From positions 186,001 to 250,000 of the IMG/VR virus record IMGVR_UViG_3300018080_008436: a DNA stretch of 64,000 nt. The stretch is one strand, 5' to 3'. The notes beneath the pieces are model-generated. The model was not told the origin of the DNA. It did not search any database and saw nothing but the letters and a program-made list of their open reading frames with translations. This document shows, piece after piece, positions 9,308 through 53,428 of the stretch (its first letter is position 1; each line of letters starts with the position of its first letter). The position numbers and the translations under genes were made by a program.

Positions 9308-9335
9308 TTGAAAAGCCCAAAAGACAGCTTATAAT
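9308..9335 (+). promoter_or_regulatory. promoter of the Gln/Asn tRNA operon
   Basis: TTGAAA-AGCCCAAAAGACAGCT-TATAAT, near-identical to the promoters at 38088-38115 and 53401-53428. Confidence 0.85.
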
Positions 9336-9375
9336 GGTAGCAACGATCAATTAAGATCAATAAGGAATTAATAAA

Positions 9376-9450
9376 ATGTCAGTACAAGTTCAGCAGAATA
9401 ATCAAAATAACCAAGCCCTTGAGGGTTTTGGGAGGTTGTTCTCTGCTTGA
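9376..9450 (+). CDS. putative attenuator leader peptide MSVQVQQNNQNNQALEGFGRLFSA
   Basis: TAAGGA SD; 9 of codons 4-13 are Gln/Asn; followed by a terminator and then Gln/Asn tRNAs. Confidence 0.88.
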   Translation: MSVQVQQNNQNNQALEGFGRLFSA

Positions 9451-9467
9451 ACATAATCCGATTTACC

Positions 9468-9500
9468 AAAGCCCTCAGGTTTCGACCTGGGGGCTTTTTT
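9468..9500 (+). terminator. attenuator terminator A
   Basis: AAAGCCCTCAGG-TTTCGA-CCTGGGGGCTTTTTT. Confidence 0.9.
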
Positions 9501-9502
9501 AT

Positions 9503-9579
9503 TGTCCGATAGCATAACTGGCTAATGCAACTGGTTCTGATCCAGTAGATTCTAGGTTCAAATCCTAGTCGGACAACCA
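9503..9579 (+). tRNA. tRNA-Gln(CTG)
   Basis: TGTCCGA/TCGGACA acceptor; ACTGG-TTCTGAT-CCAGT; encoded CCA. Confidence 0.93.
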
Positions 9580-9581
9580 AT

Positions 9582-9655
9582 GGCTCTGTAGCTCAGTGGC
9601 GAGCATTTGGCTGTTAACCAAAAGGAAGCGAGTTCGATTCTCGTCGGGGCCTCCA
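9582..9655 (+). tRNA. tRNA-Asn(GTT), short D-loop
   Basis: TTTGG-CTGTTAA-CCAAA; T arm GCGAG-TTCGATT-CTCGT; CCA. The 6-nt D loop and U73 are atypical. Confidence 0.8.
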
Positions 9656-9677
9656 GAAGTTCTTTGATAATTTATGT

Positions 9678-9768
9678 TGGTAGGTGACCCGAATGGTAAG
9701 GGCCTCGGCTGTTAACCGAGTATGGGCAGGGATGTCCTTTGCGAGTTCAAGTCTCGCCCTACCAGCCA
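9678..9768 (+). tRNA. tRNA-Asn(GTT) with long variable arm (type II)
   Basis: CTCGG-CTGTTAA-CCGAG, then V-arm GGGCA-GGGA-TGTCC; G73; CCA. Confidence 0.88.
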
Positions 9769-9771
9769 AAC

Positions 9772-9896
9772 TGTGGCGTAGCTTAATGGTTAAAGCTCTA
9801 AAAGAAAGGAGTCTGATAATAAGACTCGTTACTGCAATAATTATTCTAAATTCGTCTATTAAACGAGAGATCTTGGTTCGAATCCAAGCGCCACAG
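9772..9896 (+). tRNA. tRNA-Asn(ATT) with a 53-nt insert (9800-9852) in the anticodon stem
   Basis: TGTGGCG/CGCCACA acceptor. Removing 9800-9852 gives a perfect CTCGT-CTATTAA-ACGAG arm and a 72-nt cloverleaf. No encoded CCA. Confidence 0.7.
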
Positions 9897-9904
9897 CTAA
9901 TGAT

Positions 9905-9981
9905 TGCCTCGTAGCATAATTGGTATTGCACCAGATTTTGATTCTGGGAATTTCTGGGTTCGAGTCCCAGCGAGGCATCCA
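9905..9981 (+). tRNA. tRNA-Gln(TTG)
   Basis: TGCCTCG/CGAGGCA; CCAGA-TTTTGAT-TCTGG; CCA. Confidence 0.92.
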
Positions 9982-10032
9982 TTTTTTACCACAAATCGTT
10001 CTATTGGTAACATTAATTTGTATAATAAAACT

Positions 10033-10776
10033 ATGTTCCCAAAAGTGGAGTCGGTTGTGAAAGAAAGGGAAAAAAGAAGTTTACTTTGGCACAAATATAA
10101 TGATGAAGAATTTAGAGAACTAGTAAAAAAGTCTCAAACATATTCTGACATACTTAGAGATCATGGCATGTCAAACAAAGGGGGGAATTGCAACACGCTA
10201 AAAAAGAGAATTGCTAAACTTGGGGTTAATGACGATCATATTGCAAAGGGGCATTCTTCTAATAAAGGTAAAAAGTTCATCTCTAAAAAGATTCCACTTA
10301 ATAAGATACTTGTAGAAAATTCTACCTACAATAGGGGGCATCTAAAAAATAGAATTATAGAAGAGAAACTAATAGATTACAAATGTCAAAAATGCGGAAT
10401 AACAAATAAATGGGAAGGCAGTGAACTTGTTTTAGTACTTGATCACATAAATGGTGTCAGTAATGATCATCGACTAAAAAACCTTCGTTTTCTATGCCCC
10501 AACTGCAACAGCCAGACAAAAACTTTTGCTGGAAGAAGTAAACGCAAAAGATATTACTGTGAACAATGCGGAAAAGAAAAATCGTATAAGCATTCTAAAA
10601 AATGCAAAAGTTGTGCCGCAAAAGATCTAGAAAAACGTAAAGTCCAAAACCGCCCTTCCAAAGAAGAACTTGCCGAAATGATTGATACAATGTCTTGGCT
10701 GGCAATCGGAAAAAAATATGGAGTTTCTGATAATGCAATCAGAAAATGGGCAAGATCTTACGGTATAATATCCTAA
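10033..10776 (+). CDS. HNH homing endonuclease with C-terminal HTH
   Basis: CQKC...LDHINGVSNDHRLKNLRFLCPNCNSQT. Start is ATG 10033 or GTG 10057 (GGAG upstream), not 9904, which lies at the tRNA. Confidence 0.9.
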   Translation: MFPKVESVVKEREKRSLLWHKYNDEEFRELVKKSQTYSDILRDHGMSNKGGNCNTLKKRIAKLGVNDDHIAKGHSSNKGKKFISKKIPLNKILVENSTYNRGHLKNRIIEEKLIDYKCQKCGITNKWEGSELVLVLDHINGVSNDHRLKNLRFLCPNCNSQTKTFAGRSKRKRYYCEQCGKEKSYKHSKKCKSCAAKDLEKRKVQNRPSKEELAEMIDTMSWLAIGKKYGVSDNAIRKWARSYGIIS

Positions 10777-10794
10777 CCTTAATGGAGAAGAGCA

Positions 10795-11028
10795 ATGAAA
10801 TTCCGCATCAAATACAAAAAAGGATTGGGCTTTTACGCTCAAGTCAAAAGATCATTCTGGGAAAACTGGATGAAAATTGGCAAACACACTGTTGGTTTTG
10901 GTCACTACCGCGAGGATTGCCTAAGCCATCCAATGGAAACCATTGAAGAAGCCAAGAAACGTGTTGAAAAGTACAAGGAGTGGGTAAGACTAACCAATCA
11001 AAAAGCAGAATATTACGAACTTCCATAA
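10795..11028 (+). CDS. hypothetical protein
   Basis: 77 aa with GGAG upstream. Confidence 0.6.
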   Translation: MKFRIKYKKGLGFYAQVKRSFWENWMKIGKHTVGFGHYREDCLSHPMETIEEAKKRVEKYKEWVRLTNQKAEYYELP

Positions 11029-11076
11029 TGGACAACAGACCGAAAGTCATAAAAGAAGCTGTTGACAAGATAACTG

Positions 11077-11116
11077 AATCAGAAGGTTGCGAGTTCGATC
11101 CTCGCTGGGACATCCA
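11077..11116 (+). pseudogene. 3' half of a tRNA (T arm, 3' acceptor strand, CCA)
   Basis: AATCAGAAGGTT-GCGAG-TTCGATC-CTCGC-TGGGACA-T-CCA; no 5' TGTCCCA strand upstream. Confidence 0.7.
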
Positions 11117-11138
11117 AATTTTGTATAATAGGAATAAT

Positions 11139-11212
11139 TACCCTATAGTGTAATGGTAGCACAAAAGTTTTTGGCACTTTTGGTCGGGGTTCAAATCCCT
11201 GTAGGGTAGCCA
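11139..11212 (+). tRNA. tRNA-Gln(TTG)
   Basis: TACCCTA/TAGGGTA; AAAGT-TTTTGGC-ACTTT; U1-A72, G73; CCA. Confidence 0.9.
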
Positions 11213-11263
11213 ACTATCTCCCCTCCTGTATAATATCTCTAAACCTTATAGGAGAAACCATTC

Positions 11264-11437
11264 ATGTCTAAAGAATTCGCCATCAATTCAAAAGAAATTA
11301 ACGAGAATAAGAGATATTCACTTTTAGCTTATGTCATAAACGAAAGATTACGTTTAGAAGGGATTAGCACAAACATTAACATACGTGAAACTGCTGATAA
11401 AATCATAGTTGACGTAAACAAGAAAGATACCACTTAA
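11264..11437 (+). CDS. small hypothetical protein (57 aa)
   Basis: AGGAGA SD, MSKEFAINSKEINE...; below the ORF-track cutoff. Confidence 0.55.
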   Translation: MSKEFAINSKEINENKRYSLLAYVINERLRLEGISTNINIRETADKIIVDVNKKDTT

Positions 11438-11679
11438 CACTTGGCTTTCATAAAAACATAGCAAATACTTGAGAGTAATGAAGTGAACGATCTAGAAAGA
11501 CATAAACAAAGACTAGCCCAAATCCATTCAGATAGCAAAAAGATAAGAGAAGATGTGGAAAACACTCTGAACATATTCAAAATATTATGGTGTCTCTTCA
11601 AAGCTTGGAGATTAAAATCAGAAGTAATTTATATAATCAAAGAGCTTGAAAAATCCTCATAACTTGCTATACTACCTGT

Positions 11680-11844
11680 ATGGCTAAAAAGAAGAAAAAG
11701 AAATACAAGAACTTCCTGGAATTCCTTGAAACCCGTCTGAATAGCGAGAATTTTAAGAAAAACGCTAGTGAAGAAGAATACCAGAAGACTCTTGAAAAAT
11801 ACAAGAAAGAGAAACTCATCCAACGATTCGGGAACAAAAAATGA
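11680..11844 (+). CDS. small basic hypothetical protein (54 aa)
   Basis: MAKKKKKKYKNFLEFLE...; ATGA overlap with the next ORF; promoter TTGAAA-16-TATACT at 11646-11673. Confidence 0.55.
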   Translation: MAKKKKKKYKNFLEFLETRLNSENFKKNASEEEYQKTLEKYKKEKLIQRFGNKK

Positions 11845-12200
11845 AACCATTTGAAGAAGTCTTTAAGATGTATCACGACATGGCAGGAGAGTGGAGAATG
11901 AATCTCGACAATCTGGCTTCTCTTCATCCTGACAGTCATATTGTTTTCGGAGCCGAAGAACCTGAATATGTATCAAAAGACTCTGTTATTGAAATGGATG
12001 TTTATCTCGCTGGAGAGAAAATCGGAGTCACAAGAGCCTGCGGAGAATTAGACAATGATGTCATTCGCAGAAATATGATTGGAATGAAAAGAGTCGGAGT
12101 AAAAAATGAGAGTGGTCATCACAATGCTTACTCCACAGGATTTGAGTTAACAGTTGATAAGGATAATAAAAGGATAGATTTAACTCCAAAAAAGTTTTAG
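11841..12200 (+). CDS. hypothetical protein
   Basis: 119-aa ORF whose stop overlaps the first base of tRNA-Cys. Confidence 0.65.
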   Translation: MKPFEEVFKMYHDMAGEWRMNLDNLASLHPDSHIVFGAEEPEYVSKDSVIEMDVYLAGEKIGVTRACGELDNDVIRRNMIGMKRVGVKNESGHHNAYSTGFELTVDKDNKRIDLTPKKF

Positions 12201-12319
12201 GTCGCGTAGTGTAATGGCAAGCATCTTATAAAATGAACCTGACATAAGGTTCTCTTCAGCAATAGTTAAAATCGTCTGCAAAACGAAGGGTCTGGGTTCG
12301 AATCCCAGCGCGACCTCCA
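12200..12319 (+). tRNA. tRNA-Cys(GCA) with a 45-nt insert (12228-12272) in the anticodon stem
   Basis: GGTCGCG/CGCGACC, U73, CCA. Removing 12228-12272 gives a perfect TTCGT-CTGCAAA-ACGAA arm. Confidence 0.8.
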
Positions 12320-12339
12320 ATTTAACATGTCAATTTAGT

Positions 12340-12367
12340 TTGACAAATTCAAAGCTGATGCTATATT
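12340..12367 (+). promoter_or_regulatory. sigma70-type promoter of rtcB
   Basis: TTGACA-16 nt-TATATT. Confidence 0.7.
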
Positions 12368-12411: not shown

Positions 12412-13680
12412 ATGATAATTTTGAAAGGCAAATACAACGAAGCGAAGATTTTCACAGATAACGTTGAATCTTCTGCTCAGGGCCAGATCATTACCTTCTT
12501 AAATGACAAAACATTTGAGAACGGAAATATCAGGATCATGCCAGATGTTCATGCAGGTGCAGGAGCCGTTATCGGGTTTACCGCTCCAGTTGGAGATAGG
12601 ATCATTCCAAACGTCATTGGAGTTGATATTGGCTGTGGAGTCTGCGCGTTCAAACTTGGACACAGAAAAGACATTGGTGAGAAGTTTGACAAACTCGACA
12701 AATTCATTGAAAAAACCATTCCTCATGGAATGAACGTTAATGGGGACTACAGAGATCTAGCCAAAAGCGGATATTGTGGAACCAAGGATGAGTTTGACGC
12801 ATTTACCGCAGAAGTAAAAGAAGTCTGCAATAGAACTGAACAGAACTTTACCAGAGTTATGTGCTCTTTGGGTTCTTTAGGTGGTGGAAACCATTTCATT
12901 GAAATTGACAAAGATGACGAAGGTAACCTCTGGTTAGTTGTTCATTCTGGTTCCAGGAATTTCGGTTTACAGATCGCCAAGTATCACCAGAACAAAGCAA
13001 AAGAATACTTGGACTTCATGAAATCGTCTGAGAACGCTAAGTTAGTGGCAGAAGTCAAAAAGACTGCGAACAAAAAAGAGATATCTGGGAAGATCAAAAA
13101 AGCCAAAGATGAGGCTAAAGAGAAGTATGGTGTACATACTGGTCTTGAGTATCTTGAAGGTGGAGGTGCTGACCAATATAAAAAGGATATGGACGTAGCT
13201 CAAAGGTTCGCAAGTTTTAACCGATTGGTTATGGTTGGTCGAATCGTTGAAGGTTTTTATGGACTGAAGTATTCAGAGATGGAAGTTTATCACTCAATCC
13301 ATAACTATATCAACTTCGAAGATGGAATCGTTCGAAAAGGAGCAATCTCTGCTCATTGTGGTGAGAAAGTTGTCATTCCTTTAAATATGGCTGATGGAAC
13401 AATCATTGGCATCGGAAAAGGAAATGAGGACTGGAATAACAGTGCGCCTCATGGAGCAGGACGTAAAATGTCCCGTTCAAAAGCCAAGAAGTCTTTGGAT
13501 GTGGATTATTTCAGGAAAAGAATGAAACAAGCTGGAGTCTGGTCTAGTTGTGTTGGAAAAAGTACATTGGATGAAGCACCAATGGCTTACAAAAAGGCCC
13601 AAGAGATTATTGACTATTTGGAGCCAACTGTTGAGATCCAATGTCACATGAAACCAGTTTATAACTTCAAGGCGCATTAA
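12412..13680 (+). CDS. rtcB: RtcB-family RNA 2',3'-cyclic/3'-phosphate ligase
   Basis: MPDVHAG, GVDIGCG, GSLGGGNHFIE, VHSGSRNFG, HNY, RKGA, SAPHGAGR, DEAPMAYK. Confidence 0.97.
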   Translation: MIILKGKYNEAKIFTDNVESSAQGQIITFLNDKTFENGNIRIMPDVHAGAGAVIGFTAPVGDRIIPNVIGVDIGCGVCAFKLGHRKDIGEKFDKLDKFIEKTIPHGMNVNGDYRDLAKSGYCGTKDEFDAFTAEVKEVCNRTEQNFTRVMCSLGSLGGGNHFIEIDKDDEGNLWLVVHSGSRNFGLQIAKYHQNKAKEYLDFMKSSENAKLVAEVKKTANKKEISGKIKKAKDEAKEKYGVHTGLEYLEGGGADQYKKDMDVAQRFASFNRLVMVGRIVEGFYGLKYSEMEVYHSIHNYINFEDGIVRKGAISAHCGEKVVIPLNMADGTIIGIGKGNEDWNNSAPHGAGRKMSRSKAKKSLDVDYFRKRMKQAGVWSSCVGKSTLDEAPMAYKKAQEIIDYLEPTVEIQCHMKPVYNFKAH

Positions 13681-36267: not shown

Positions 36268-36295
36268 CAAAAAAGCCCCCAAAAAATGGGGGCTT
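36268..36295 (-). terminator. intrinsic terminator closing the Thr/Lys tRNA operon
   Basis: AAGCCCCC-loop-GGGGGCTT followed by a U tract on the minus strand. Confidence 0.75.
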
Positions 36296-36349
36296 GAATT
36301 GCTATATGGGATATATTTTTAATTGGAAATATTACCCACATAGCAATAT

Positions 36350-36437
36350 TGGTGGAGCCGACAGGATTCGAACCTGCGCGGAGCTTGCGCTCTCTTGATT
36401 AAAAGTCAAGTACCTTCAGCCACTCGGTTACGACTCC
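36350..36437 (-). tRNA. tRNA-Lys(TTT) with long variable arm (type II)
   Basis: CTTGA-CTTTTAA-TCAAG; V-arm GAGC-GCAA-GCTC; type II-like D arm; A73; CCA. Confidence 0.9.
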
Positions 36438-36439
36438 AA

Positions 36440-37315
36440 TTAAATTATTCCATAACTTCTCGCCCATTTACGAATTGTATTACATGTTACCCCATATTTT
36501 TTACCAATAGCAACCCAAGTCATCTTATCTATCATGTCTTTTAGCTCTTCTTTAGATGGGCGATTCTGAACCTTACGACGACTTGGCAACTTACCATTAC
36601 ATGAAGTACATCTGGTGCTTCTATGCTCAATTGCTTTGTTGCAATCTACACATCTATTTGTTTTTTCTTCCTCTAGCTTTTTAACATATTCCTCTATGGT
36701 TGTTTCAATTTTACAGTTTGCACATTTGTCCTTAATGACATTTTTGATCTGGGCAACAACCATTTTTCTATGCTTTTTGTCAAGCTTATTGTATTTAGAC
36801 CACCTGATTCTATATACGAACCATCCATTGTCTTCCAAATATTTATTTCTACGCTTATCACTTTTTATTATTTTTTCATCGCAATAATGTTGCTCTCCAT
36901 CGATTTCTATGTCTATTTTTCTTATTGGATCAGAGAAATCGAGTTGATATGTGCCAACTCTGTGATGGTATATTAACTCTATATTCTCATTTCTAAATAA
37001 CTTCTCAAAATATTTTTCTGGGTACGACATTCCTTTGCTATGATGGTTAAGTAAATACGGGACTTTATCTGGATTTTCTTTAAGAAACTTTCTTCTTGCC
37101 TTACTAATCTTTTCTTTTGTTTTCTCTGACAGTTTTCTGGGTTTTAGTTTACAACTTAATTTCATGGCACTCGATCTTTCTCTTGATACAAAATCTCCTC
37201 GTTTTCTGGCAGACGTAATTGCCGCCATACTAACTCCAAATTCCTCAATAACTTCTCTCCATGTATGTCCTTCGTCATAAAACTTCTGAATTTCAATCCA
37301 ATTGTATCTAGGCAT
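36440..37315 (-). CDS. Vsr/DUF559-like endonuclease (putative homing endonuclease) with C-terminal HTH
   Basis: YQLDFS...IDIEIDGEQHY...DKRRNKYLEDNGWFVYRIRW; C-terminus nearly identical to that of the HNH ORF. Confidence 0.88.
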   Translation of the reverse strand: MPRYNWIEIQKFYDEGHTWREVIEEFGVSMAAITSARKRGDFVSRERSSAMKLSCKLKPRKLSEKTKEKISKARRKFLKENPDKVPYLLNHHSKGMSYPEKYFEKLFRNENIELIYHHRVGTYQLDFSDPIRKIDIEIDGEQHYCDEKIIKSDKRRNKYLEDNGWFVYRIRWSKYNKLDKKHRKMVVAQIKNVIKDKCANCKIETTIEEYVKKLEEEKTNRCVDCNKAIEHRSTRCTSCNGKLPSRRKVQNRPSKEELKDMIDKMTWVAIGKKYGVTCNTIRKWARSYGII

Positions 37316-37404
37316 AACAACACTCCTTTTTAGTTGTATTGTTATGTATTTCTAGATAAGTATAGCAACATCCTTTGAGAAATTGGACTTTTATGGTTCA
37401 AATT

Positions 37405-37481
37405 TGGTGGGCTGGGTGGGACTTGAACCCACGACCAACGGAGTAAGAATCCGCGACTCTATCCAACTGAGTTACCAACCC
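37405..37481 (-). tRNA. tRNA-Lys(CTT)
   Basis: GCGGA-TTCTTAC-TCCGT; CCA. Confidence 0.92.
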
Positions 37482-37486
37482 ATTTT

Positions 37487-37561
37487 TGGTGGACCTGGAG
37501 AATTTTGAAATCTCGACCAACGGATTAAAAGTCCGCGACTCTGCCTCTGAGTTACAGGTCC
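37487..37561 (-). tRNA. tRNA-Lys(TTT)
   Basis: GCGGA-CTTTTAA-TCCGT; CCA. Confidence 0.9.
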
Positions 37562-37616
37562 AAAGTGAGAGAGCATATCTACTTCGAAGACTTAACAATA
37601 TGCTTTTAAACTCTCT

Positions 37617-37692
37617 TGGAGCCGCCTGACGGAATTGAACCGACATCCTCTGAGTACAAAACAGAGATAATAATCCTTTATACTAAGGCGGC
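37617..37692 (-). tRNA. tRNA-Thr(TGT)
   Basis: GCCGCCT/AGGCGGC; loop TTTGTAC with a U31-U39 mismatch; CCA. Confidence 0.85.
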
Positions 37693-37698
37693 GTCATA

Positions 37699-37770
37699 AG
37701 CCCTTGCCCAGCAACGATCTGGGACTAATCCCTTACGAGGGGATAGTTCTGCCAATTAAACTACAAGGGC
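37699..37770 (-). tRNA. tRNA-Thr(CGT)
   Basis: ATCCC-CTCGTAA-GGGAT; atypical T loop ATCGTTG; no encoded CCA. Confidence 0.8.
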
Positions 37771-37798
37771 ATCTTACTTAAATTTTCAAAGATCATTC

Positions 37799-37873
37799 TG
37801 GAGCATCCAATCGGACTCGAACCGATAACCCCCTCCTTACCATGGAGGAATTCTACCATTGAACTATGGATGC
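37799..37873 (-). tRNA. tRNA-Thr(GGT)
   Basis: CCTCC-ATGGTAA-GGAGG; CCA. Confidence 0.9.
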
Positions 37874-37881
37874 ATAGGCAC

Positions 37882-37915
37882 AAAAAAACCCGAAGTCTTT
37901 ATCGGACTTCGGGTT
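37882..37915 (-). terminator. attenuator terminator B
   Basis: AACCCGAAGTC-CGATAAA-GACTTCGGGTT-TTTTT. Confidence 0.9.
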
Positions 37916-37937: not shown

Positions 37938-38015
37938 TCAAGACAACAAACCTCCCGAAGCCACGCGTTTCTTCGTGGTTTTGGTTGTTTTAGTTGTCTT
38001 GGTTGTAGCGTACAT
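37938..38015 (-). CDS. putative attenuator leader peptide MYATTKTTKTTKTTKKRVASGGLLS
   Basis: TAAGGA SD; codons 4-16 are all Thr (8) or Lys (5); precedes the terminator and the Thr/Lys tRNAs. Confidence 0.9.
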   Translation of the reverse strand: MYATTKTTKTTKTTKKRVASGGLLS

Positions 38016-38087: not shown

Positions 38088-38115
38088 ATTATAAGCTATG
38101 TTTGGAGCTTTTCAA
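38088..38115 (-). promoter_or_regulatory. promoter of the Thr/Lys tRNA operon
   Basis: TTGAAA-AGCTCCAAACATAGCT-TATAAT. Confidence 0.85.
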
Positions 38116-40876: not shown

Positions 40877-41863
40877 TTATGGTGGACTACTCTTATATGG
40901 ATGTCCAGTTGGTAAACTTCCTTCTTGGCCCCACTTCCAAGCGAGATATCCCTCAACCTCTTGACGCTCTGTGTTTGTTAGTGCCTTTCTATAAACAAGA
41001 ACCTCTGCATAATCTGCTTGCATGAAGTTACTATATCCCTCATTCAGTGCGCCCAAGGTAAGTGTAGAGCTATAGTTCGGAATAGATGTGCTAGTTTCTG
41101 TACTTGTTTTACTTAAGCTACCGTCCACATACAATTTTGATCTTTGAGAAGCGATCAAAGATCCGTCAAATACTGTTTCCATCATATAAACCGTTCCACT
41201 ACTGAAAGTTTGAGGATCGGAATCCCACCTATCCCCAATACCGTTAATATCGATATATACATAACTATCATTCCAATAGAACATGCCATAAGCGTATTCC
41301 CCGAATTCGCCAAAACCAGTGCGCTTAGCGATAATGCCATCTGGATCTCCACTTAAAGTTGGTTTTAGCATTACCAATATTGTTAATCCTGAAGTTCCGT
41401 CTAAAGTGTCATCGTCTGGAACAACCAATATGTCTGAAACTCCATCAAATCTAACGACATATTTTCCATCTAAGGCATTTGAGACATATGTGGGTTGATC
41501 AGTACCCGTACCTTGAGCCGCATGGTTTTCATTCCCTGATTTATCGTCCCATTGACTAACGAATCCTCCTGATTCAGTAATCGTATCAGAGTCGTCTGCA
41601 TCAAGCCACAGAACTAAATTTGATATATCGGACGGCATAAATCCATCTGAACTCGAAGAACTACTTGAAGATACGTTGTTGAAACTTTCAGAGCTTTCTG
41701 AAGAACTTGATTCTAGAGCACACTCTAGACAAGAATCAAAAGTTCCACCTACTTCAGATGGATCAGTATCAACTGGGGCCAAGGTTTCTCCTACAAAAAG
41801 ATAACATTCTCCATTTATTTTAATTGAAAGCCCTTGGTAATCTTGTAAAATCTTATCTGCCAT
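40877..41863 (-). CDS. shared N-module + LamG/concanavalin-like protein (paralog 6 of 6)
   Basis: LWLDADD...SQWDDKSGN...EVLVYRKAL...VEGYLAWKWG; 1-nt stop/start overlap. Confidence 0.82.
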   Translation of the reverse strand: MADKILQDYQGLSIKINGECYLFVGETLAPVDTDPSEVGGTFDSCLECALESSSSESSESFNNVSSSSSSSSDGFMPSDISNLVLWLDADDSDTITESGGFVSQWDDKSGNENHAAQGTGTDQPTYVSNALDGKYVVRFDGVSDILVVPDDDTLDGTSGLTILVMLKPTLSGDPDGIIAKRTGFGEFGEYAYGMFYWNDSYVYIDINGIGDRWDSDPQTFSSGTVYMMETVFDGSLIASQRSKLYVDGSLSKTSTETSTSIPNYSSTLTLGALNEGYSNFMQADYAEVLVYRKALTNTERQEVEGYLAWKWGQEGSLPTGHPYKSSPP

Positions 41864-42822
41864 TATGGTGCCGCTCCTTTGTATGGATGTGTTAACGGTA
41901 AATTATCTTCTAGCCCCCATTTCCAAGCAAGATAGCCTTCTAATTTTTGTCTGGTGTCAGTTGTTATATCGTTCTCAATAACGATTATCTCGCAAATGTA
42001 TCCATCCAAACGTTCGGTTGCTCTGTCAGCGACTCCCATTCCTTGAGAAGCGGTATTTGAAGTATTTCCTGCGGTTTGAAATGCTGTTGGCCCAGAAAGC
42101 GTTCCGTCATAAGTCGAATATACTTGTGCATTAGCCCAATCTGCAATAGAAACAAACATATGTGGGTCTGTATCGGTTGTTTGCCAAAAAATTTCTAAAT
42201 AGGAATCACTATCTAATCTTCTACCAGCAGTACCCAGGTCTCCAGCTTCAACCTGATGCTTTAATCTTGTGGAACCACTATTCTGATAAACCTCAAATAG
42301 AATATTTGTCCCAGTAATAACATCCTTCTTGTGAACAGTTAAAATCATAGCAGAAGGAACGTTTTGTAGATAAGCACCCGACCCGATAGCAATACTGTCA
42401 TCTCCATCAAAGTCTATTACATTTAAGCCATTTTGCGTTGTGGCACCAGTAGTTGGCTGTTCGGCACCAGTTCCTTGAGTTAAATGATAATCATTTCCTG
42501 ATTTATCATCCCATTGACTAACACTCCCTCCAGAATCAGTAATGGTATCTGTATCAGCCGCATCATACCAACCTAGCAATGTCAATTCTGCTGGGGTGAA
42601 ACCTCTACTTGATGAGCTACTTGATGAAGATACATTGTTAAAACTTTCAGAACTTTCTGAAGAGCTAGATTCTAAAGCACACTCTAAACAAGAATCGTAA
42701 GTTCCACCTATCTCTGAAGGGTCAGTGTCAACTGGAGCAGTCGTTTCCCCTACAAAAAGATAACATTCTCCATTTATCTTTATTGAAGGTCCCTGATATT
42801 GTTGTAAAATTTTATCTTCCAT
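41863..42822 (-). CDS. shared N-module + LamG-like protein (5 of 6)
   Basis: GWYDAADTDTITDSGGSVSQWDDKSGN. Confidence 0.82.
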   Translation of the reverse strand: MEDKILQQYQGPSIKINGECYLFVGETTAPVDTDPSEIGGTYDSCLECALESSSSESSESFNNVSSSSSSSSRGFTPAELTLLGWYDAADTDTITDSGGSVSQWDDKSGNDYHLTQGTGAEQPTTGATTQNGLNVIDFDGDDSIAIGSGAYLQNVPSAMILTVHKKDVITGTNILFEVYQNSGSTRLKHQVEAGDLGTAGRRLDSDSYLEIFWQTTDTDPHMFVSIADWANAQVYSTYDGTLSGPTAFQTAGNTSNTASQGMGVADRATERLDGYICEIIVIENDITTDTRQKLEGYLAWKWGLEDNLPLTHPYKGAAP

Positions 42823-43787
42823 TATGGTGGCGCTCCTTTATATGGATGATCTGATGGTAAATTATCTTCTAGACTCCATTTCCAGGCCAAATAACCTTCG
42901 AGTTTTTGTCTTGTATCCAAAGTCTCGTCTTCAACAACTATTAACTCCCCAATAGCTCCATCAAAACGTTTATTTCCTCCCCCAACATCTCCATCCCCGA
43001 TCTCAAATAACTGAGTTGTATCATTGGGAATAGAAGTTGGGTTCGTTTGAACAGACTCAGCTTGCTCAACCCCATTCACAAAACATCTAGCATCTCCATA
43101 TGTCCCACCCTGAGGTCTTGTCATTACAGTTATGGTAGGGGTACTAAGAGTTACTGGTGTATATTTGTCATTACCATTATTATATCTCCAAGCCCATCCA
43201 TCAGAACCAACAGACACCTTAATTGAATTTGTGACATTTCCACTAAAACCACACCAACGATCATCTGAAGTTACACTACTATCAACCACTATGACTACGG
43301 CAATCATAACATCAGGGTTAGCTCCAAGACCAAGTCTTGAATTTATAGATAATTCTTTTTGTGGGAAATCTAGAATATTTAACCCATTTATATTTCTTGT
43401 TCCTGTAATTGGTTGATCTGATCCGCTTCCTTGAGTTACATCATAATTATTCCCAGACTTGTCGTCCCATTGACTTACATTTCCACCTGAATCCGTTATG
43501 GTGTCAGAATCTGTTGCGTCCCACCAACCAACAGGACTGACATCTAATGGATTAAACCCTCTACTTGATGAAGAACTGCTAGAAGAAACATTATTAAAAC
43601 TCTCCGAACTGTCTGAGGAACTAGAAGTACTTGATTCCAATGTACACTCAAGACAAGAGTCAAAAACCCCACCTATTTCAGATGGATCTGCATTAATTGC
43701 TTCAGTTGTCTCTTCAACAAATAAATAGCATTGTCCATCTATCTTAACTGAAGCCCCCTGATAATCTTGAAATATCTTAACTGACAT
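42822..43787 (-). CDS. shared N-module + LamG-like protein (4 of 6)
   Basis: Start MSVKIFQDYQG at 43787 (TAATG overlap). Confidence 0.82.
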   Translation of the reverse strand: MSVKIFQDYQGASVKIDGQCYLFVEETTEAINADPSEIGGVFDSCLECTLESSTSSSSDSSESFNNVSSSSSSSSRGFNPLDVSPVGWWDATDSDTITDSGGNVSQWDDKSGNNYDVTQGSGSDQPITGTRNINGLNILDFPQKELSINSRLGLGANPDVMIAVVIVVDSSVTSDDRWCGFSGNVTNSIKVSVGSDGWAWRYNNGNDKYTPVTLSTPTITVMTRPQGGTYGDARCFVNGVEQAESVQTNPTSIPNDTTQLFEIGDGDVGGGNKRFDGAIGELIVVEDETLDTRQKLEGYLAWKWSLEDNLPSDHPYKGAPP

Positions 43788-44668
43788 TATGGAACCCACT
43801 TATTATTCAAATAATTAATCACAGTATCTTGCTCAGAACTTGTCAAATCTTCGTTATAGAAAATCAATTCGCAAAGAGCCATTTTTAAATACCTAACATT
43901 CCCTGAGATAGGATCACCACCTATACGGATGTTGTTATAAACTGATCCTGCAATTGTTGAACCTCTCTGAAACTTAGAAACTTGTATCTGATCAAAAGTA
44001 AAACTAGCTGATGCAACTCCATTAACTTCAAAATCACCATCTGTATAACAAAAATCATTGGCATCATTTGTTGGTCTCCAAGCCGCAACAGTTCCACTAG
44101 CTAGTCGAATGTTACCTCTATCGCCTGCATTTGAGACCAAACCACTACAACATCCAGTATTTGGCTGACCAGACTTTACAATGACTGCCGCAAAGACCCA
44201 CTCCATATCTGTAACATTAATAGAATTCCTTTGCAGAAAATCATTTGAACCATCAAAAGTTAAAGTGTTAAGATTATTTTGAGTTTCCAATTCTGTTTGA
44301 GGCTGATTCGACCCAGTTCCCTGAGTTACATGGAAATTGTTTCCTGATTTATCATCCCATTGACTAACAAATCCACCTGAATCGGTTATAGTGTCCGTAT
44401 CAGATGCGTCATACCACAAAGACAAGCCTGGGATATCATATGGGAAGAAGCCACTTGATGACGAACTGGAAGAAGAAGTATTTCCTATGCTTTCAGAACT
44501 GTCTGAAGAACTTGATTCTAGAGCACACTCTAAACACGAACTAAAAGTCCCACCTACCTCTGATGGATCGGTATCTACTGGAGCAGTTGTTTCTCCTACA
44601 AAAAGATAACACTCTCCGTTTATCTTAATTGAAGGACCTTGATATTCTTGTAAGATTTTATCATCCAT
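43787..44668 (-). CDS. shared N-module + LamG-like protein (3 of 6)
   Basis: Start MDDKILQEYQG at 44668 (TAATG overlap). Confidence 0.82.
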   Translation of the reverse strand: MDDKILQEYQGPSIKINGECYLFVGETTAPVDTDPSEVGGTFSSCLECALESSSSDSSESIGNTSSSSSSSSGFFPYDIPGLSLWYDASDTDTITDSGGFVSQWDDKSGNNFHVTQGTGSNQPQTELETQNNLNTLTFDGSNDFLQRNSINVTDMEWVFAAVIVKSGQPNTGCCSGLVSNAGDRGNIRLASGTVAAWRPTNDANDFCYTDGDFEVNGVASASFTFDQIQVSKFQRGSTIAGSVYNNIRIGGDPISGNVRYLKMALCELIFYNEDLTSSEQDTVINYLNNKWVP

Positions 44669-45534
44669 TATATGCCCCACTTATCAGACAAATAATCTTC
44701 CACTTGTAATCTCTCACTAGTCGTTAAAGCTCTATTGTATATTATTATTTCTCCAATATCACCATTAAAAGTCTCCCCAATACGCAAACTATAATTAGAT
44801 GGGTTGGCAAAATCATTTGTTGTTAAGTCGCTGAACTGGGAGGTTCCATTCATCCAAACATTCTGGCCAACACCATCTTCATTCCTCATGGTAAAATAAT
44901 TCCAGTTATTACCTCCAGTCCAAGACCACTGACACCTTCCTCCAGCACTCCATTCTCCAAAATCGAAATACCCATCACCAGTACTCCACGTCAAGTGACA
45001 TCCAATTCTATTTACTTCTCTTGGATTTGAAAAAATTGGATAGCTTGCTGTAGTTACGCTTCTTTTCTGAACGATGAACATTGTTATATCATCTTGAGGC
45101 CATGTATATGGATCTTTATCCATGTAATCTCCCCCATCCCATCTAATAATATTATTGCCATTTTGAACATTTGTTTGATAGGTTGGTTGTAACGAACCAG
45201 TCCCTTGAGTAACATCATTGTCATTACCTGATTTGTCATCCCATTGACTAACACTGCCAGAGGATTCTGTTATGGTATTAGAATCAGCCGCGTCAAGCCA
45301 CAATTGAATGTCTGCAATATCATATGGGAAGAAACCACTCGAACTGGAAGAAGAACTTGAATCCAACGAACTTGATGAACTTTCTAGAGTACACTCCAAA
45401 CAAGAATCATAGGTCCCTCCAATCTCAGATGGGTCAGCATTAATACTTTCAGTTGTTTCCTCAACAAATATATAACACTGCCCATCGATTTTAACAGAAA
45501 AGCCTTGATAATTTTGAAATATCTTAACTGACAT
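44668..45534 (-). CDS. shared N-module + LamG-like protein (2 of 6)
   Basis: Start MSVKIFQNYQG at 45534 (TGATG overlap). Confidence 0.82.
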   Translation of the reverse strand: MSVKIFQNYQGFSVKIDGQCYIFVEETTESINADPSEIGGTYDSCLECTLESSSSSLDSSSSSSSSGFFPYDIADIQLWLDAADSNTITESSGSVSQWDDKSGNDNDVTQGTGSLQPTYQTNVQNGNNIIRWDGGDYMDKDPYTWPQDDITMFIVQKRSVTTASYPIFSNPREVNRIGCHLTWSTGDGYFDFGEWSAGGRCQWSWTGGNNWNYFTMRNEDGVGQNVWMNGTSQFSDLTTNDFANPSNYSLRIGETFNGDIGEIIIYNRALTTSERLQVEDYLSDKWGI

Positions 45535-46457
45535 CAGATTCCCCACTTATCCATTAAATAATTTTCAACAGTAATTCTTTCACCATCTGTTAAATCTCTA
45601 TCATAAATAACAACTTCTCCACAATAGAACCTGGCATAAGCATTGTTCCCTCGATTAACTCCTAATCTAATTCTACTTGAAAAAAGACTAAAAGTATCAT
45701 TTCTAGTTGAGCCTGTTTGACTACCGTTTAAAAAGGCTTTTTGTTGAGATCCTGTATTCCAAGCTGTAAAAAGATATCTAGTATTATTAACTGGACTTCC
45801 ATATGTTATCTGCCTTTGAGTTGTGGTAGCATCATGATATCTATAGTCCATATTAGCTGACCCTGCAAAACTTAACTGTAATGCTCCAGCAAAATTAAAT
45901 ACATTATGACTACTATATATACCATCATTAGTGTCAAATGGAGAGAACGCAGTAACAGCCATAAAAATTGTAAATGCTCCTGATGGACTTGCAGATAAGT
46001 TTTCCATATCATCATCAACTCCATCAAAAAACATACAGCCAAGGCCATTAAAACCAGAAGAAAGATATTGAGGTTGTTTGGTTCCAGTCCCTTGAGTTAA
46101 ATCCCACCCTCCAGTCCATTTGTCATCAATTTGGGAAATAGATCCTGCTGACTCTGTAATCGTATTAGAATCTGATGCATCATACCAAGCATAAAGGTTG
46201 TTGATGTCATATGGGTAGAAACCACTTGAGGAAGAGCTACTGGAAGAAACATTATTGAAACTCTCAGAACTTTCCGAAGAACTAGAAGTACTTGAAGAAC
46301 TAGACTCTAATTCACATTGAAGACAAGAGTCGTAAATTCCACCAATCTCAGATGGGTCAGCATTAATTGCTTCGGTAGTTTCCTCAACGAATATATAACA
46401 CTGCCCATCGATTTTAACAGAAGAGCCTTGGTAATCTTGAAATATCTTGACTGACAT
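45534..46457 (-). CDS. shared N-module + LamG-like protein (1 of 6)
   Basis: AWYDASD...EVVIYDRDLT...VENYLMDKWG. Confidence 0.82.
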   Translation of the reverse strand: MSVKIFQDYQGSSVKIDGQCYIFVEETTEAINADPSEIGGIYDSCLQCELESSSSSTSSSSESSESFNNVSSSSSSSSGFYPYDINNLYAWYDASDSNTITESAGSISQIDDKWTGGWDLTQGTGTKQPQYLSSGFNGLGCMFFDGVDDDMENLSASPSGAFTIFMAVTAFSPFDTNDGIYSSHNVFNFAGALQLSFAGSANMDYRYHDATTTQRQITYGSPVNNTRYLFTAWNTGSQQKAFLNGSQTGSTRNDTFSLFSSRIRLGVNRGNNAYARFYCGEVVIYDRDLTDGERITVENYLMDKWGI

Positions 46458-50440: not shown

Positions 50441-50450
50441 AATTTACTCC

Positions 50451-51944: not shown

Positions 51945-52026
51945 TGGTATGGGGGGTGGGACTTGAACCCACAGAAATTCACTTGTTTATAAGACAAGCC
52001 GCTTAACCAAATTTGCGTACCCCCAC
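51945..52026 (-). tRNA. tRNA-Ile(TAT)
   Basis: CTTGT-CTTATAA-ACAAG; 9-nt variable region; A73; CCA. Confidence 0.85.
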
Positions 52027-52042
52027 ACAGGTAAGAAGTTTT

Positions 52043-52149
52043 GGGGAGGTGGGGAGGCTCACTGGGGTAAGTGGCTTCTTATTATATTGCCGTCCATTGT
52101 GTCAGCCCGTTCTCCTTCTAACGGGTGTTTCCGATGACATGGCATCCCC
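52043..52149 (-). ncRNA. unidentified structured RNA between tRNA-Val and tRNA-Ile
   Basis: Closing GGGGA/TCCCC helix; nested CCAT-TGTCA..TGACA-ATGG and CCCGTT/AACGGG stems; second hairpin GAAGCCACT/AGTGAGCCTC. GC-rich within an AT-rich context. Confidence 0.5.
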
Positions 52150-52151
52150 TT

Positions 52152-52228
52152 TGGTGGGCAGTACAGGACTCGAACCTGTCACGACCTCGGTGTAAACGAG
52201 GCATTCTAGCCAAATGAATTAACTGCCC
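52152..52228 (-). tRNA. tRNA-Val(TAC)
   Basis: CCTCG-TTTACAC-CGAGG; CCA. Confidence 0.93.
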
Positions 52229-52259
52229 AGTAAAATCATATTCGAAATACTTCTTTCAT

Positions 52260-52287
52260 ATTATAACCTAAATTTCCTTTAGTTCAA
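52260..52287 (-). promoter_or_regulatory. internal promoter upstream of tRNA-Val/ncRNA/tRNA-Ile
   Basis: TTGAAC-16 nt-TATAAT. Confidence 0.65.
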
Positions 52288-52292
52288 CAAAC

Positions 52293-52373
52293 AAGCTGAT
52301 TTATTTTTTGAAGGGTTTGAACCTTCTAGATGGTGTAAGCATCGTTAACCTGTTTTTTGCTGTAATCAGCCTT
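52293..52373 (-). ncRNA. small RNA with end-pairing stem, ACAGCAA motif and a T-arm
   Basis: AGGCTGATT/AATCAGCTT stem; internal GAAGG-TTCAAAC-CCTTC. Confidence 0.55.
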
Positions 52374-52379
52374 TATTTT

Positions 52380-52456
52380 TGGTGGACCTACACGGATTCG
52401 AACCGAGATTTCCTCCCTGCCAGAGAGGTGTGTTAGCCATTAGTCACTATAAGCCC
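52380..52456 (-). tRNA. tRNA-Ala(GGC)
   Basis: CCTCT-CTGGCAG-GGAGG; G3.U70; CCA. Confidence 0.88.
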
Positions 52457-52490
52457 TTTTTGTTTCATAACTCGTTGATAATTAACGACT

Positions 52491-52569
52491 TGGTGGAGAC
52501 GGTCGGAATCGAACCGACCACATGCTGGTTGCAAACCAGTATCGCCAAAGCCTTGGTACATGCGCCCCC
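52491..52569 (-). tRNA. tRNA-Ala(TGC), atypical D arm
   Basis: CTGG-TTTGCAA-CCAG; G3.U70; CCA. Confidence 0.82.
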
Positions 52570-52574
52570 AAGTT

Positions 52575-52820
52575 TTAAACGCCTAATTCGTTATCCTCAA
52601 AAAACACAACATCCGAAATCGGTTCTAGTCTTTCGTATGTCTCATTCCATATTTCAATTTCTTCATCCGTCAATGCAACCTTGTCATTTTTACAGTTCCA
52701 TCGATCTTTGTCTGGACACCAACAACTGCCTTCTGCATGTATCCATTGTGCCATGCATTTCTCAAACATTTTCTTGTAATCTACGTTGTCTTCCATCGTC
52801 TGTCTCCAGTATCTGGTCAT
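52575..52820 (-). CDS. hypothetical protein within the tRNA cluster
   Basis: 81 aa; may start at MEDNVDY. Confidence 0.5.
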   Translation of the reverse strand: MTRYWRQTMEDNVDYKKMFEKCMAQWIHAEGSCWCPDKDRWNCKNDKVALTDEEIEIWNETYERLEPISDVVFFEDNELGV

Positions 52821-52861
52821 TTATACGGACATCATGGCCACATAAATGGCCACATAAGTCT

Positions 52862-52938
52862 TGGTGGAGCATAAGAGACTCGAACTCTTGACATCCTGCT
52901 TGCAAAGCAGGTGCTCTAGCCATCTGAGCTAATGCCCC
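52862..52938 (-). tRNA. tRNA-Ala(TGC)
   Basis: Canonical GGGGCATTAGCTCAG...CCTGC-TTTGCAA-GCAGG; G3.U70; CCA. Confidence 0.95.
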
Positions 52939-52999
52939 AAAATACGGGATACCTAAGCATTGCCCGTTTTTGAATGGATGTCGAAACATTGCCATTCTT

Positions 53000-53092
53000 T
53001 GGTGGAGAAGATTGGAGTCGAACCAATTAAAATTGTTTGCCGAAGAGAGCCTTATAACAAGCTCAGTTTGCCCTCCGCAGGGCATCTTCTCC
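53000..53092 (-). ncRNA. tRNA-like RNA lacking a canonical anticodon arm
   Basis: GGAGAAG/CTTCTCC acceptor, GCCCT-GCGG-AGGGC arm, ATTGG-TTCGACT-CCAAT T arm, ACCA; the centre is the hairpin+TCTTCGGCAA element. Confidence 0.65.
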
Positions 53093-53129
53093 AGTTGTTT
53101 TAGAACTCTGTTCGTTAAAACATCGTTCT

Positions 53130-53206
53130 TGGTAGTTGGGACAGGACTCGAACCTGCATCCTCCGATATGTAAAAACGGTGCTCCGCGCAATTAAGCTAC
53201 CCAACC
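53130..53206 (-). tRNA. tRNA-Val(TAC)
   Basis: Loop TTTACAT, one stem mismatch; CCA. Confidence 0.8.
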
Positions 53207-53232
53207 AACAATAATAAATTGTAAAAGATCAC

Positions 53233-53263
53233 AAAAAAAGCCCTGTCATTTCTGACAGGGCTT
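53233..53263 (-). terminator. attenuator terminator C
   Basis: AAGCCCTGTCA-GAAA-TGACAGGGCTT-TTTTT. Confidence 0.92.
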
Positions 53264-53285
53264 AAACCGACTTCTGGAAACTACA

Positions 53286-53372
53286 TCATCCAGAAAGAGC
53301 AGAAAAGCCCTGCCCGTCTGCGACTACCGCGACGGCTACTACTGCTATGGCTATTTCTACTCTCTTTTTCAT
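53286..53372 (-). CDS. putative attenuator leader peptide MKKRVEIAIAVVAVAVVADGQGFSALSG
   Basis: GGAG SD 9 nt upstream; 13 of codons 5-18 are Val/Ala/Ile; both Ile codons are ATA. Confidence 0.88.
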   Translation of the reverse strand: MKKRVEIAIAVVAVAVVADGQGFSALSG

Positions 53373-53400
53373 AAAACATATCTCCAGTTACGTTGCCCCT

Positions 53401-53428
53401 ATTATAAGGCATCTATTTGGCTTTTCAA
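53401..53428 (-). promoter_or_regulatory. promoter of the Val/Ala/Ile tRNA operon
   Basis: TTGAAA-AGCCAAATAGATGCCT-TATAAT. Confidence 0.85.

Follow-up and report, generated by a model that had tools for sequence, protein, structure and literature searches.

Candidate codon-sensing attenuators upstream of amino-acid-sorted tRNA operons in a huge bacteriophage

Main finding

A huge bacteriophage (genome of ~524 kb) sorts its tRNA genes into operons by amino acid, and each of these operons is preceded by a short open reading frame (ORF) written in the codons that its tRNAs read, followed by a transcription terminator. This layout implies that each tRNA set is made only when ribosomes stall for lack of it, although this function is inferred from sequence. 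The analysis centered on a 64,000-nucleotide stretch of the IMG/VR record IMGVR_UViG_3300018080_008436 (positions 186,001 to 250,000; hereafter the window), in which a sequence-only reading had noticed three such units. That observation is confirmed and lies far beyond chance, whereas the interpretation attached to it is partly supported. The central idea of leader-peptide attenuator-like units gating amino-acid-sorted tRNA operons holds and is strengthened, but the proposed four-segment 1:2 / 2:3 / 3:4 layout of trp, thr, and ilv is not supported as stated. In addition, the proposed trigger (starvation versus host anticodon nucleases) and the negative feedback remain inferences. Full-text literature searches and Rfam provided no description of such control for tRNA genes, and the paper that published a related genome (LR756501) does not contain the word stems "attenuat" or "leader". 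These results agree with the sequence-only reading, which knew of no described case.

Organization of the three units

ARAGORN and Rfam identified 16 standard tRNAs in three clusters within the window, namely Gln/Asn (unit A), Thr/Lys (unit B), and Val/Ala/Ile (unit C) (Table 1). The three clusters follow the same 28-bp promoter, and the motif TTGAAAAGC-N12-TTATAAT occurs exactly three times in the window, each time just upstream of a cluster, compared to 0 in 100 shuffles. Each leader ORF (24–28 codons) has a purine-rich SD-like element (AAGGAA or GGAGA) located 8–11 nt upstream, and the central run of the ORF consists of the amino acids of the downstream cluster. Just after this control run lies a segment complementary to the 5' arm of a U-tailed terminator, with duplex energies of -15.4 to -18.1 kcal/mol and z scores of -3.5 to -4.3 against dinucleotide shuffles. 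The terminators have stems of 11–13 bp (-17 to -22 kcal/mol) and end 3, 9, and 27 nt before the first tRNA in units A, B, and C, respectively.

Table 1. Positions of the features of the three units in the window.
Unit	Feature	Position	Strand	Description
A	Promoter	9308–9335	+	TTGAAA -35, 16-nt spacer, TATAAT -10, shared extended motif
A	Leader ORF	9376–9450	+	24 codons plus TGA; control run QVQQNNQNNQ, codons 4–13 (9385–9414), 5 Gln and 4 Asn codons
A	Antiterminator segment	9417–9430	+	ORF codons 14–19; complementary to the terminator 5' arm; -17.9 kcal/mol, z -3.5
A	Intrinsic terminator	9468–9500	+	13-bp stem, UUCG loop, U tract
A	tRNA cluster	9503–11212	+	Gln(CTG), Asn(GTT) x2, Gln(TTG) x2; tRNA-like gene with an insert (9772–9897); HNH endonuclease ORF
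B	Promoter	38088–38115	-	
B	Leader ORF	37938–38015	-	25 codons plus TGA; control run TTKTTKTTKTTKK, codons 4–16 (38006–37968), 8 Thr and 5 Lys codons
B	Antiterminator segment	37953–37963	-	Codons 18–21; -15.4 kcal/mol, z -4.3
B	Intrinsic terminator	37882–37915	-	11-bp stem plus U7
B	tRNA cluster	36350–37873	-	Thr(GGT, CGT, TGT), Lys(TTT, CTT), Vsr/DUF559-like endonuclease ORF (36440–37315), then Lys(TTT); a terminator-like hairpin follows at about 36270–36300
C	Promoter	53401–53428	-	
C	Leader ORF	53286–53372	-	28 codons plus TGA; control run VEIAIAVVAVAVVA, codons 5–18 (53360–53319), 6 Val, 5 Ala, and 2 Ile codons; both Ile codons are AUA, matching tRNA-Ile(TAT)
C	Antiterminator segment	53304–53315	-	Codons 20–23; -18.1 kcal/mol, z -4.3
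C	Intrinsic terminator	53233–53263	-	11-bp stem, GAAA loop, U7
C	tRNA cluster	51945–53206	-	Val(TAC) x2, Ala(TGC), Ala(GGC), Ile(TAT); weaker tRNA-like genes at 53000–53092 and 52491–52567

Distribution among phage lineages

The sequence-only reading had predicted that further tRNA clusters in this genome and in relatives would carry cognate leaders, and this prediction was fulfilled. A fourth unit (Ser/Leu/Cys/Tyr), with all four parts in the same order, lies elsewhere in the same genome. Moreover, 17 units were found in six other phage lineages, one of which is the published 735-kb genome LR756501. The groupings in these lineages include His/Phe/Trp/Lys(/Ser), Arg/Ser, Lys, Leu, Tyr/Asn/Asp/Cys/Ile, Met/Gln/Ile(/Glu), and Arg/Thr/Val/Ala/Gly/Pro. 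In the complete LR756501 genome, 53 of 56 tRNAs lie in five such units. The low-GC lineages have no SD-like sequence before the leader.

Correspondence between leader codons and tRNA sets

Control runs match the downstream tRNA identities in the 21 units. In a score matrix of leaders and clusters, the identity assignment is the unique best of 5040 permutations over seven amino acid classes, and is reached by 0 of 100000 permutations over 16 units. In comparison, control short ORFs upstream of unrelated tRNAs score no more than 5/12, whereas the four units of this genome score 9–12/12. The leader also follows the tRNA set when the groupings differ between lineages. Trp and Ser codons appear where Trp and Ser tRNAs join the His/Phe/Lys cluster, a separate Lys-only unit carries a Lys-rich leader, and one 16-tRNA cluster of six amino acids has a leader run built from those six. 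However, some leader residues have no cognate tRNA in the cluster as detected. These are Ser in the His/Phe leaders of L260, L262, and L263, and Ala in the Val/Ile leader of L252 (labels of relatives from the other lineages). At the codon level, all 22 anticodon species of the four clusters in this genome are sampled by a leader codon (joint chance of 0.013, given the peptides). The Leu-only leader of LR756501 uses all six Leu codons, and Ile codons are AUA where the tRNA-Ile of the cluster is UAU.

RNA pairings

The antiterminator (2:3) and terminator (3:4) pairings are both supported. Complementarity between the antiterminator segment and the terminator 5' arm has z scores of -2.0 or lower in 17 of 21 units, and each leader prefers its own terminator, which ranks first or second of 21 in 15 units (0 of 20000 permutations do as well). 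The remaining four units, namely L252 Val/Ile, L252 Gln/Asn, L263 Arg/Ser, and LR756501 Tyr/Asn/Asp/Cys/Ile, show weak complementarity (z scores of 0 to -1.3). Among the His/Phe orthologs, the antiterminator, 5' arm, and 3' arm change together, as judged by eye on the sequences.

In contrast, no trp-style 1:2 protector hairpin is detectable, as complementarity between the control codons and the antiterminator is no better than chance (mean z of +0.2 over 21 units). An untranslated leader would therefore be predicted to read through, unlike trp. A helix between the control codons and the ORF end is conserved but invariant in the Thr/Lys family, and is weak in general (mean z of -0.9). The antiterminator lies inside the ORF or overlaps its stop codon. 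In static folds with a masked ribosome footprint, the terminator 5' arm pairs with the ORF segment when the A site is on the control codons, but not when the ribosome is further on. However, in units A and B the antiterminator forms even without a ribosome, and again once the ribosome has reached the stop codon, such that termination in the unstalled state depends on an assumed steric and kinetic block by the ribosome.

The absence of a protector hairpin and the ribosome-free folds of units A and B may also suggest that the polarity is reversed or that the sensor is general. With read-through of an untranslated leader, the operons would be on by default and shut off only when ribosomes translate efficiently, whichever codon is limiting. 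This reading is unlikely as a full explanation because a general sensor would not need codon runs that track the tRNA set of each cluster across 12 different groupings, although it is compatible with the main explanation as an additional input.

Proposed mechanism

The most plausible explanation (probability of about 0.8) is that each unit is a ribosome-mediated transcription attenuator, which makes one tRNA operon respond to how fast ribosomes can decode the operon's own codons. In this view, a strong sigma-70-type promoter would fire constitutively and a ribosome would start on the leader ORF. If the cognate charged tRNAs (of host or phage origin) are plentiful, the ribosome would run through the control codons and either cover the antiterminator segment or sit at the stop codon, which is located 15–27 nt (38–40 nt in two of the 21 units) before the terminator. 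In either position it would keep the antiterminator away from the terminator 5' arm, the terminator would fold, and transcription would end just before the first tRNA. If any of the sampled tRNAs is scarce, the ribosome would stall within the control run, and the naked antiterminator would pair with the 5' arm as soon as the latter is transcribed, such that the terminator cannot form and RNA polymerase reads into the tRNA genes. The new tRNAs would then relieve the stall and close a negative feedback loop. The sequence analysis itself establishes the parts with their order and spacing, the statistical match between leader codons and downstream tRNAs, the unit-specific complementarity between antiterminator and terminator, and conservation across seven phage lineages. 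Translation of the leader ORFs, conditional read-through and the direction of the switch, the physiological trigger, and the feedback are all inferred.

Alternatively, the same hardware may respond to aminoacylation or amino acid supply rather than tRNA abundance. The units would then coordinate tRNA output, and in relatives the adjacent aminoacyl-tRNA synthetase genes, with amino acid availability, as the pheST and thr-type attenuators do. Stalling cannot distinguish an uncharged tRNA from a missing one. Furthermore, in relatives a class II synthetase gene lies directly downstream of the Thr/Lys cluster and a class Ib synthetase gene lies inside the His/Phe/Trp-Lys region, both of which may be co-transcribed. 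However, no synthetase gene lies in or after the three operons in the window, and groupings such as Ser/Leu/Cys/Tyr follow the tRNA content rather than any biosynthetic pathway. Extra tRNA does not cure amino acid starvation, so the circuit is only sensible as a sensor of tRNA supply. For these reasons, this alternative is considered doubtful.

Least likely is the possibility that the hairpins are ordinary constitutive terminators or processing signals, and that the short ORFs are either chance occurrences or encode small peptides with functions of their own. On present evidence, which comes from sequence alone, the terminated leader RNAs or the peptides could have trans functions, as reported for trpL in Sinorhizobium. 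However, a strong promoter pointing straight into a constitutive terminator 3–27 nt before the tRNAs would silence them, and chance cannot explain the codon-tRNA match or the unit-specific complementarity to the terminator arm.

A broader reading, which we consider likely but less certain than the mechanism itself, is that a clade of huge phages uses a modular riboregulator. The constant part would be an expression platform (antiterminator, terminator, and a fixed distance from stop codon to terminator), whereas the variable part would be a codon cassette rewritten to match whichever tRNAs sit downstream, giving every tRNA operon its own demand-driven control with negative feedback. If so, this would be the first case of tRNA genes governed by ribosome-mediated attenuation, and it could let the phage top up exactly those tRNAs that a given host lacks or that host anticodon nucleases destroy. 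tRNA genes are generally thought to be controlled at the promoter (growth rate, stringent response), and phage tRNAs are usually discussed only as codon-usage patches or as replacements for cleaved host tRNAs. A sensor that reads decoding speed for a chosen set of codons, and answers by transcribing exactly the tRNAs for those codons, would be a new regulatory logic for the translation machinery. It would also explain why these phages sort tRNA genes by amino acid, and would provide a testable handle on when huge phages deploy their tRNAs (host mismatch, late-gene demand, or defence by anticodon nucleases). The units are short (about 150–200 nt) and modular, and their natural diversity covers all 20 amino acids across 12 groupings, so they could serve as ready-made reporters of the supply of individual tRNAs in living cells.

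Comparison with known systems

Leader-peptide attenuators of amino acid biosynthetic operons (trp, his, thr, leu, ilv, and pheA) likewise have a short translated ORF with a run of regulatory codons, an intrinsic terminator ahead of the regulated genes, and an upstream segment that can pair with the terminator 5' arm instead, with the position of the ribosome choosing between the two folds. The phage units differ in that the regulated genes are tRNAs rather than enzymes, each leader would sense one to six amino acids matching the tRNA set of the operon, the 1:2 hairpin is not detectable, the antiterminator lies inside the ORF or on its stop codon, and the setting is a phage. For Rfam leader families, the only resemblance is below the gathering threshold, with bit scores of 25.2 against 49 for His_leader (RF00514), 18.4 against 55 for Thr_leader (RF00506), and 16.7 against 55 for Phe_leader (RF01859). 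In the whole window, only tRNA and tmRNA reached the gathering threshold.

The pheST (pheM leader) attenuator of Escherichia coli phenylalanyl-tRNA synthetase also controls a component of the translation machinery through cognate codons by ribosome-mediated attenuation. However, it controls a synthetase protein and senses one amino acid, whereas in the phage units the product sensed and the product made would be the same molecules. T-box riboswitches are cis-acting leader RNAs that switch between terminator and antiterminator according to the state of a specific tRNA and control translation-related genes, but they bind uncharged tRNA directly through a specifier codon and a T-box bulge without translation, whereas here a translated ORF would do the reading. 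No T-box hit was found in the three leaders, even at E ≤ 10. For the tRNA gene clusters of other large phages, including the T4-like KVP40, Vibrio phage 2.275.O, Stenotrophomonas phage CM1, and Xanthomonas phage XacN1, many tRNA genes are also clustered, often with homing endonucleases among them. In those genomes the tRNAs are in mixed amino acid order, and a scan of their tRNA regions found no cognate leader-terminator units.

Additional features of the units

Some details of the window correct the sequence-only reading. Leader C has an earlier ATG (53379) in another frame that opens a Ser/Arg-rich ORF, but its SD spacing of 2 nt is poor and the cognate frame is preferred. In addition to tRNAs, the clusters hold homing-endonuclease genes and several tRNA-like genes with inserts. 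Finally, the last tRNA-Gln of unit A (11139) lies 1.1 kb from the others, behind a -10-like motif of its own.

tRNA clusters and their leaders

Both ARAGORN and Rfam identified one tmRNA and 16 standard tRNAs in the window, with the tRNAs all located in three clusters. The extended promoter TTGAAAAGC-N12-TTATAAT occurs exactly three times in the 64 kb, whereas none was found in 100 shuffled sequences, and each copy is located just upstream of a cluster and on the same strand. Each promoter is followed by a short ORF behind a purine-rich SD-like element, and the central run of each ORF is made of the amino acids of the corresponding cluster. In addition, a stable hairpin with a U tract ends 3, 9, and 27 nt before the first tRNA of clusters A, B, and C, at positions 9500, 37882, and 53233, respectively. 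The sequence-only reading, which had described these promoters, leaders, and terminators, was therefore accurate at the stated coordinates apart from minor corrections. Among these, a second ATG in leader C, located right after the SD, opens an overlapping ORF in another frame, which is probably a by-product of the GUN/GCN codon run. Moreover, extended -10-like TGTATAAT motifs recur inside cluster A, such that some genes in this cluster may escape the attenuator. Further tRNA-like genes inside the clusters were found only with intron or relaxed settings. The identities of these genes are uncertain, and they may be interrupted or decaying tRNAs.

Coordinates of the features in the window, in the same phage genome, and in related phages
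Feature	Sequence	Position	Strand	Description
tmRNA	Window	6970-7352	-	Rfam 143 bits; 2 kb from tRNA cluster A
tmRNA promoter	Window	7392-7365	-	Near-consensus extended -10
Leader ORF A	Window	9376-9450	+	Central run QVQQNNQNNQ
tRNA cluster A	Window	9503-11212	+	Gln and Asn
tRNA-like gene	Window	9772-9897	+	Inside cluster A
HNH endonuclease	Window	9904-10776	+	Inside a tRNA cluster
TGTATAAT motifs	Window	~10022, ~11122, ~11228	+	One just before the distal tRNA-Gln (11139)
tRNA-like gene with insert	Window	12200-12319	+	Insert of about 45 nt; Rfam tRNA, 40 bits
RtcB RNA-ligase gene	Window	12412-13680	+	Directly downstream of the preceding gene
tRNA cluster B	Window	37873-36350	-	Three Thr and three Lys
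Vsr/DUF559-like endonuclease	Window	36440-37315	-	Inside a tRNA cluster
Leader ORF B	Window	38015-37938	-	Central run TTKTTKTTKTTKK
First tandem array	Window	40877-46457	-	Six ORFs of about 300-330 aa, 36-46% identical; PHROG virion structural protein
tRNA cluster C	Window	53206-51945	-	Val, Ala, and Ile
tRNA-like genes	Window	53000-53092, 52491-52567	-	Inside cluster C
Leader ORF C	Window	53372-53286	-	Central run VEIAIAVVAVAVVA
Overlapping ORF in leader C	Window	53379-53281	-	32 codons, rich in Ser and Arg
Second tandem array	Window	59528-63046	-	Four ORFs of about 245 aa, 34-70% identical
Fourth leader-tRNA unit	L034 (locus of the same genome)	10346-10017	-	Leader run SLSLSLCSSYLSL
Aminoacyl-tRNA synthetase genes	L252, L263, L255 (loci of relatives)	11008-12342, 8425-9147, 9847-11187, respectively		Within or just after leader-gated clusters
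His/Phe/Lys leaders with Ser codons	L260, L262, L263 (loci of relatives)	8760-8867, 8805-8909, 7472-7570, respectively		4-7 Ser codons
tRNAs with anticodon CTA	LR756501.1	~690585, ~690663		Outside any leader-gated cluster

Alternative pairing between the leaders and the terminators

In each of the three units, the ORF segment just after the control run (codons 14-19, 18-21, and 20-23 in units A, B, and C, respectively) is complementary to the 5' arm of the terminator. The duplex energies range from -15.4 to -18.1 kcal/mol, and at most 2 of 500-1000 dinucleotide shuffles reach these values. When the transcript was cut before the 3' arm and folded with a 29-nt ribosome footprint masked, the 5' arm paired with this segment if the A site was placed on the control codons, and the pairing was lost once the ribosome had moved onto the segment.

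The sequence-only reading had also claimed a trp-type 1:2 pairing, but this hairpin was tested and rejected. Across 21 units from this genome and its relatives, complementarity between the control codons and the antiterminator equals chance (mean z +0.2). A helix between the control codons and the end of the ORF is conserved but invariant in the Thr/Lys family, and is weak in general. The stop codon lies at a fairly constant distance of 15-27 nt from the terminator arm in 19 of the 21 units and at 38-40 nt in the other two, and in several units the antiterminator overlaps the stop codon. These patterns led to the inference that the ribosome itself, either on the antiterminator or parked at the stop codon, would keep the antiterminator from acting.

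A fourth unit in the same genome

The window is part of a 524,692-bp metagenome contig, of which IMG/VR holds a 476-kb version and an identical 296-kb copy from a second sample. A search of this genome with the strict promoter pattern found one more unit, as the sequence-only reading had predicted, in which the leader is followed by a terminator and then by Cys x2, Tyr x2, Leu x5, and Ser x5. All 22 anticodon species of the four clusters are sampled by at least one leader codon. Given the peptides and the codon usage of this phage, the joint chance of this pattern is 0.013, such that sampling at the isoacceptor level is only modestly significant and is suggestive rather than decisive. In the part of the 524-kb contig that was read, which excludes most of it, tRNAs for the other nine amino acids were not located.

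Megablast and blastn of the unit B region against phage records gave only tRNA-level similarity, and the protein encoded upstream of unit B has almost no relatives. In IMG/VR, a loose promoter pattern returned mostly chance hits, the strict pattern found only this genome and its identical copy, and a conserved Thr/Lys leader DNA pattern returned chance hits only. A metagenome scan with the promoter pattern, partial in its coverage, again found only this genome. Comparisons with PHROG and Pfam as well as tblastn gave no informative lineage for the phage.

Units in related phages

The HNH and Vsr/DUF559-like endonucleases in the tRNA clusters of the window share a C-terminal module of about 120 aa (45% identity). 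Relatives of the latter also lie in tRNA clusters of other huge phages, suggesting that these may be homing endonucleases that target tRNA regions. Homologs of this Vsr-like endonuclease of cluster B led to other phage contigs, which represent six further lineages after the removal of identical copies. Two other endonuclease relatives (loci L258 and L259) led to unrelated or truncated contexts.

Two of these lineages (GC 33-34%) have Thr/Lys, Gln/Asn, and Val/Ile clusters, and their leaders are clearly homologous to those in the window, with many synonymous differences in the control codons. Three lineages (GC 28-29%) have His/Phe/(Trp)/Lys clusters with leaders rich in His, Lys, Phe, and Trp, as well as Arg/Ser clusters with leaders rich in Ser and Arg. 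One of these three also has a separate Lys-only unit with a Lys-rich leader. The His/Phe/Lys leaders of three lineages (loci L260, L262, and L263) carry Ser codons although no Ser tRNA was detected in those clusters, whereas the same cluster in LR756501 contains tRNA-Ser(CGA). The cause is either an undetected tRNA or a relic. In addition, aminoacyl-tRNA synthetase genes in relatives (class II next to the Thr/Lys cluster and class Ib inside the His/Phe/Trp-Lys region) may be co-regulated with the leader-gated clusters.

The sixth lineage is LR756501, the 735-kb genome of Al-Shayeb et al. (2020), which was scanned piece by piece. Among the 56 tRNAs found in this genome, 53 are located in five units: Trp/His/Phe/Lys/Ser; Leu, whose leader uses all six Leu codons; Ile/Cys/Asp/Asn/Tyr, with the run YNDYCIND; Met/Gln/Ile plus Glu; and a 16-tRNA unit for Arg/Thr/Val/Ala/Gly/Pro, whose leader run is built from those six residues. 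Three of these units share nearly the same terminator, and their leader peptides contain or end in the motif LIG, which points to a duplicated constant platform with a rewritten codon cassette. A blastn search with the LR756501 leader against phage records found only itself. Two tRNAs of this genome have the amber-reading anticodon CTA, which may relate to stop-codon recoding.

Statistical support across units

When each leader was scored against the amino-acid set of each cluster, the true assignment was the single best of 5040 permutations over seven classes and was reached by none of 100000 permutations over 16 units. In comparison, short ORFs upstream of tRNAs in 235 unrelated loci scored at most 5 of 12, whereas the four units of this genome scored 9-12. 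When terminators were swapped between units, each leader paired best or second best with its own terminator in 15 of 21 cases, and no permutation of 20000 did as well. However, four units have weak antiterminators. Among the four His/Phe orthologs, the antiterminator, 5' arm, and 3' arm change together, as judged by eye on the sequences. MAFFT placed one of these orthologs out of register, and the swap test was therefore used instead of a formal count of pairs in the alignment.

Comparison with known leaders and phage tRNA regions

No Rfam family reached its threshold on the leaders. The best were His_leader (25 bits against 49) and Thr_leader (18 bits against 55), and no T-box match was found. 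The tRNA regions of KVP40, Vibrio phage 2.275.O, Stenotrophomonas phage CM1, and XacN1 have mixed tRNA order and no such leaders. Full-text literature searches found no description of leader-peptide control of tRNA genes in phages or elsewhere, although most subscription journals fell outside these searches and absence is not proof. The paper that published LR756501 (Al-Shayeb et al., 2020) discusses tRNA counts but contains neither "attenuat" nor "leader".

Proposed mechanism

The most plausible explanation is ribosome-mediated attenuation in which a stall at cognate codons gives read-through into the tRNAs, with a probability of about 0.8. The parts and their co-variation with the tRNA content are directly supported by the sequences, whereas the translation of the leaders, the direction of the switch, the trigger, and the feedback are inferred. 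The interpretation in the sequence-only reading was thus partly supported. Because more tRNA cannot cure amino-acid starvation, the circuit makes most sense as a gauge of tRNA supply, which could reflect host-phage codon mismatch, late-gene demand, or tRNA loss to host nucleases. Given that no protector hairpin was detected, an untranslated leader should read through, and general loss of translation may therefore be a second input. Taken together, these findings indicate a real, conserved, and apparently undescribed use of a known mechanism.

Other features of the window

The RtcB ligase and tmRNA next to cluster A fit a phage that invests in keeping translation running. The tRNA-like gene directly upstream of the RtcB gene has an anticodon stem-loop that, by eye, reads GCA (Cys), and this arrangement hints at an insert removed by cleavage and RtcB ligation. 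Finally, the window contains two tandem arrays of paralogous genes.
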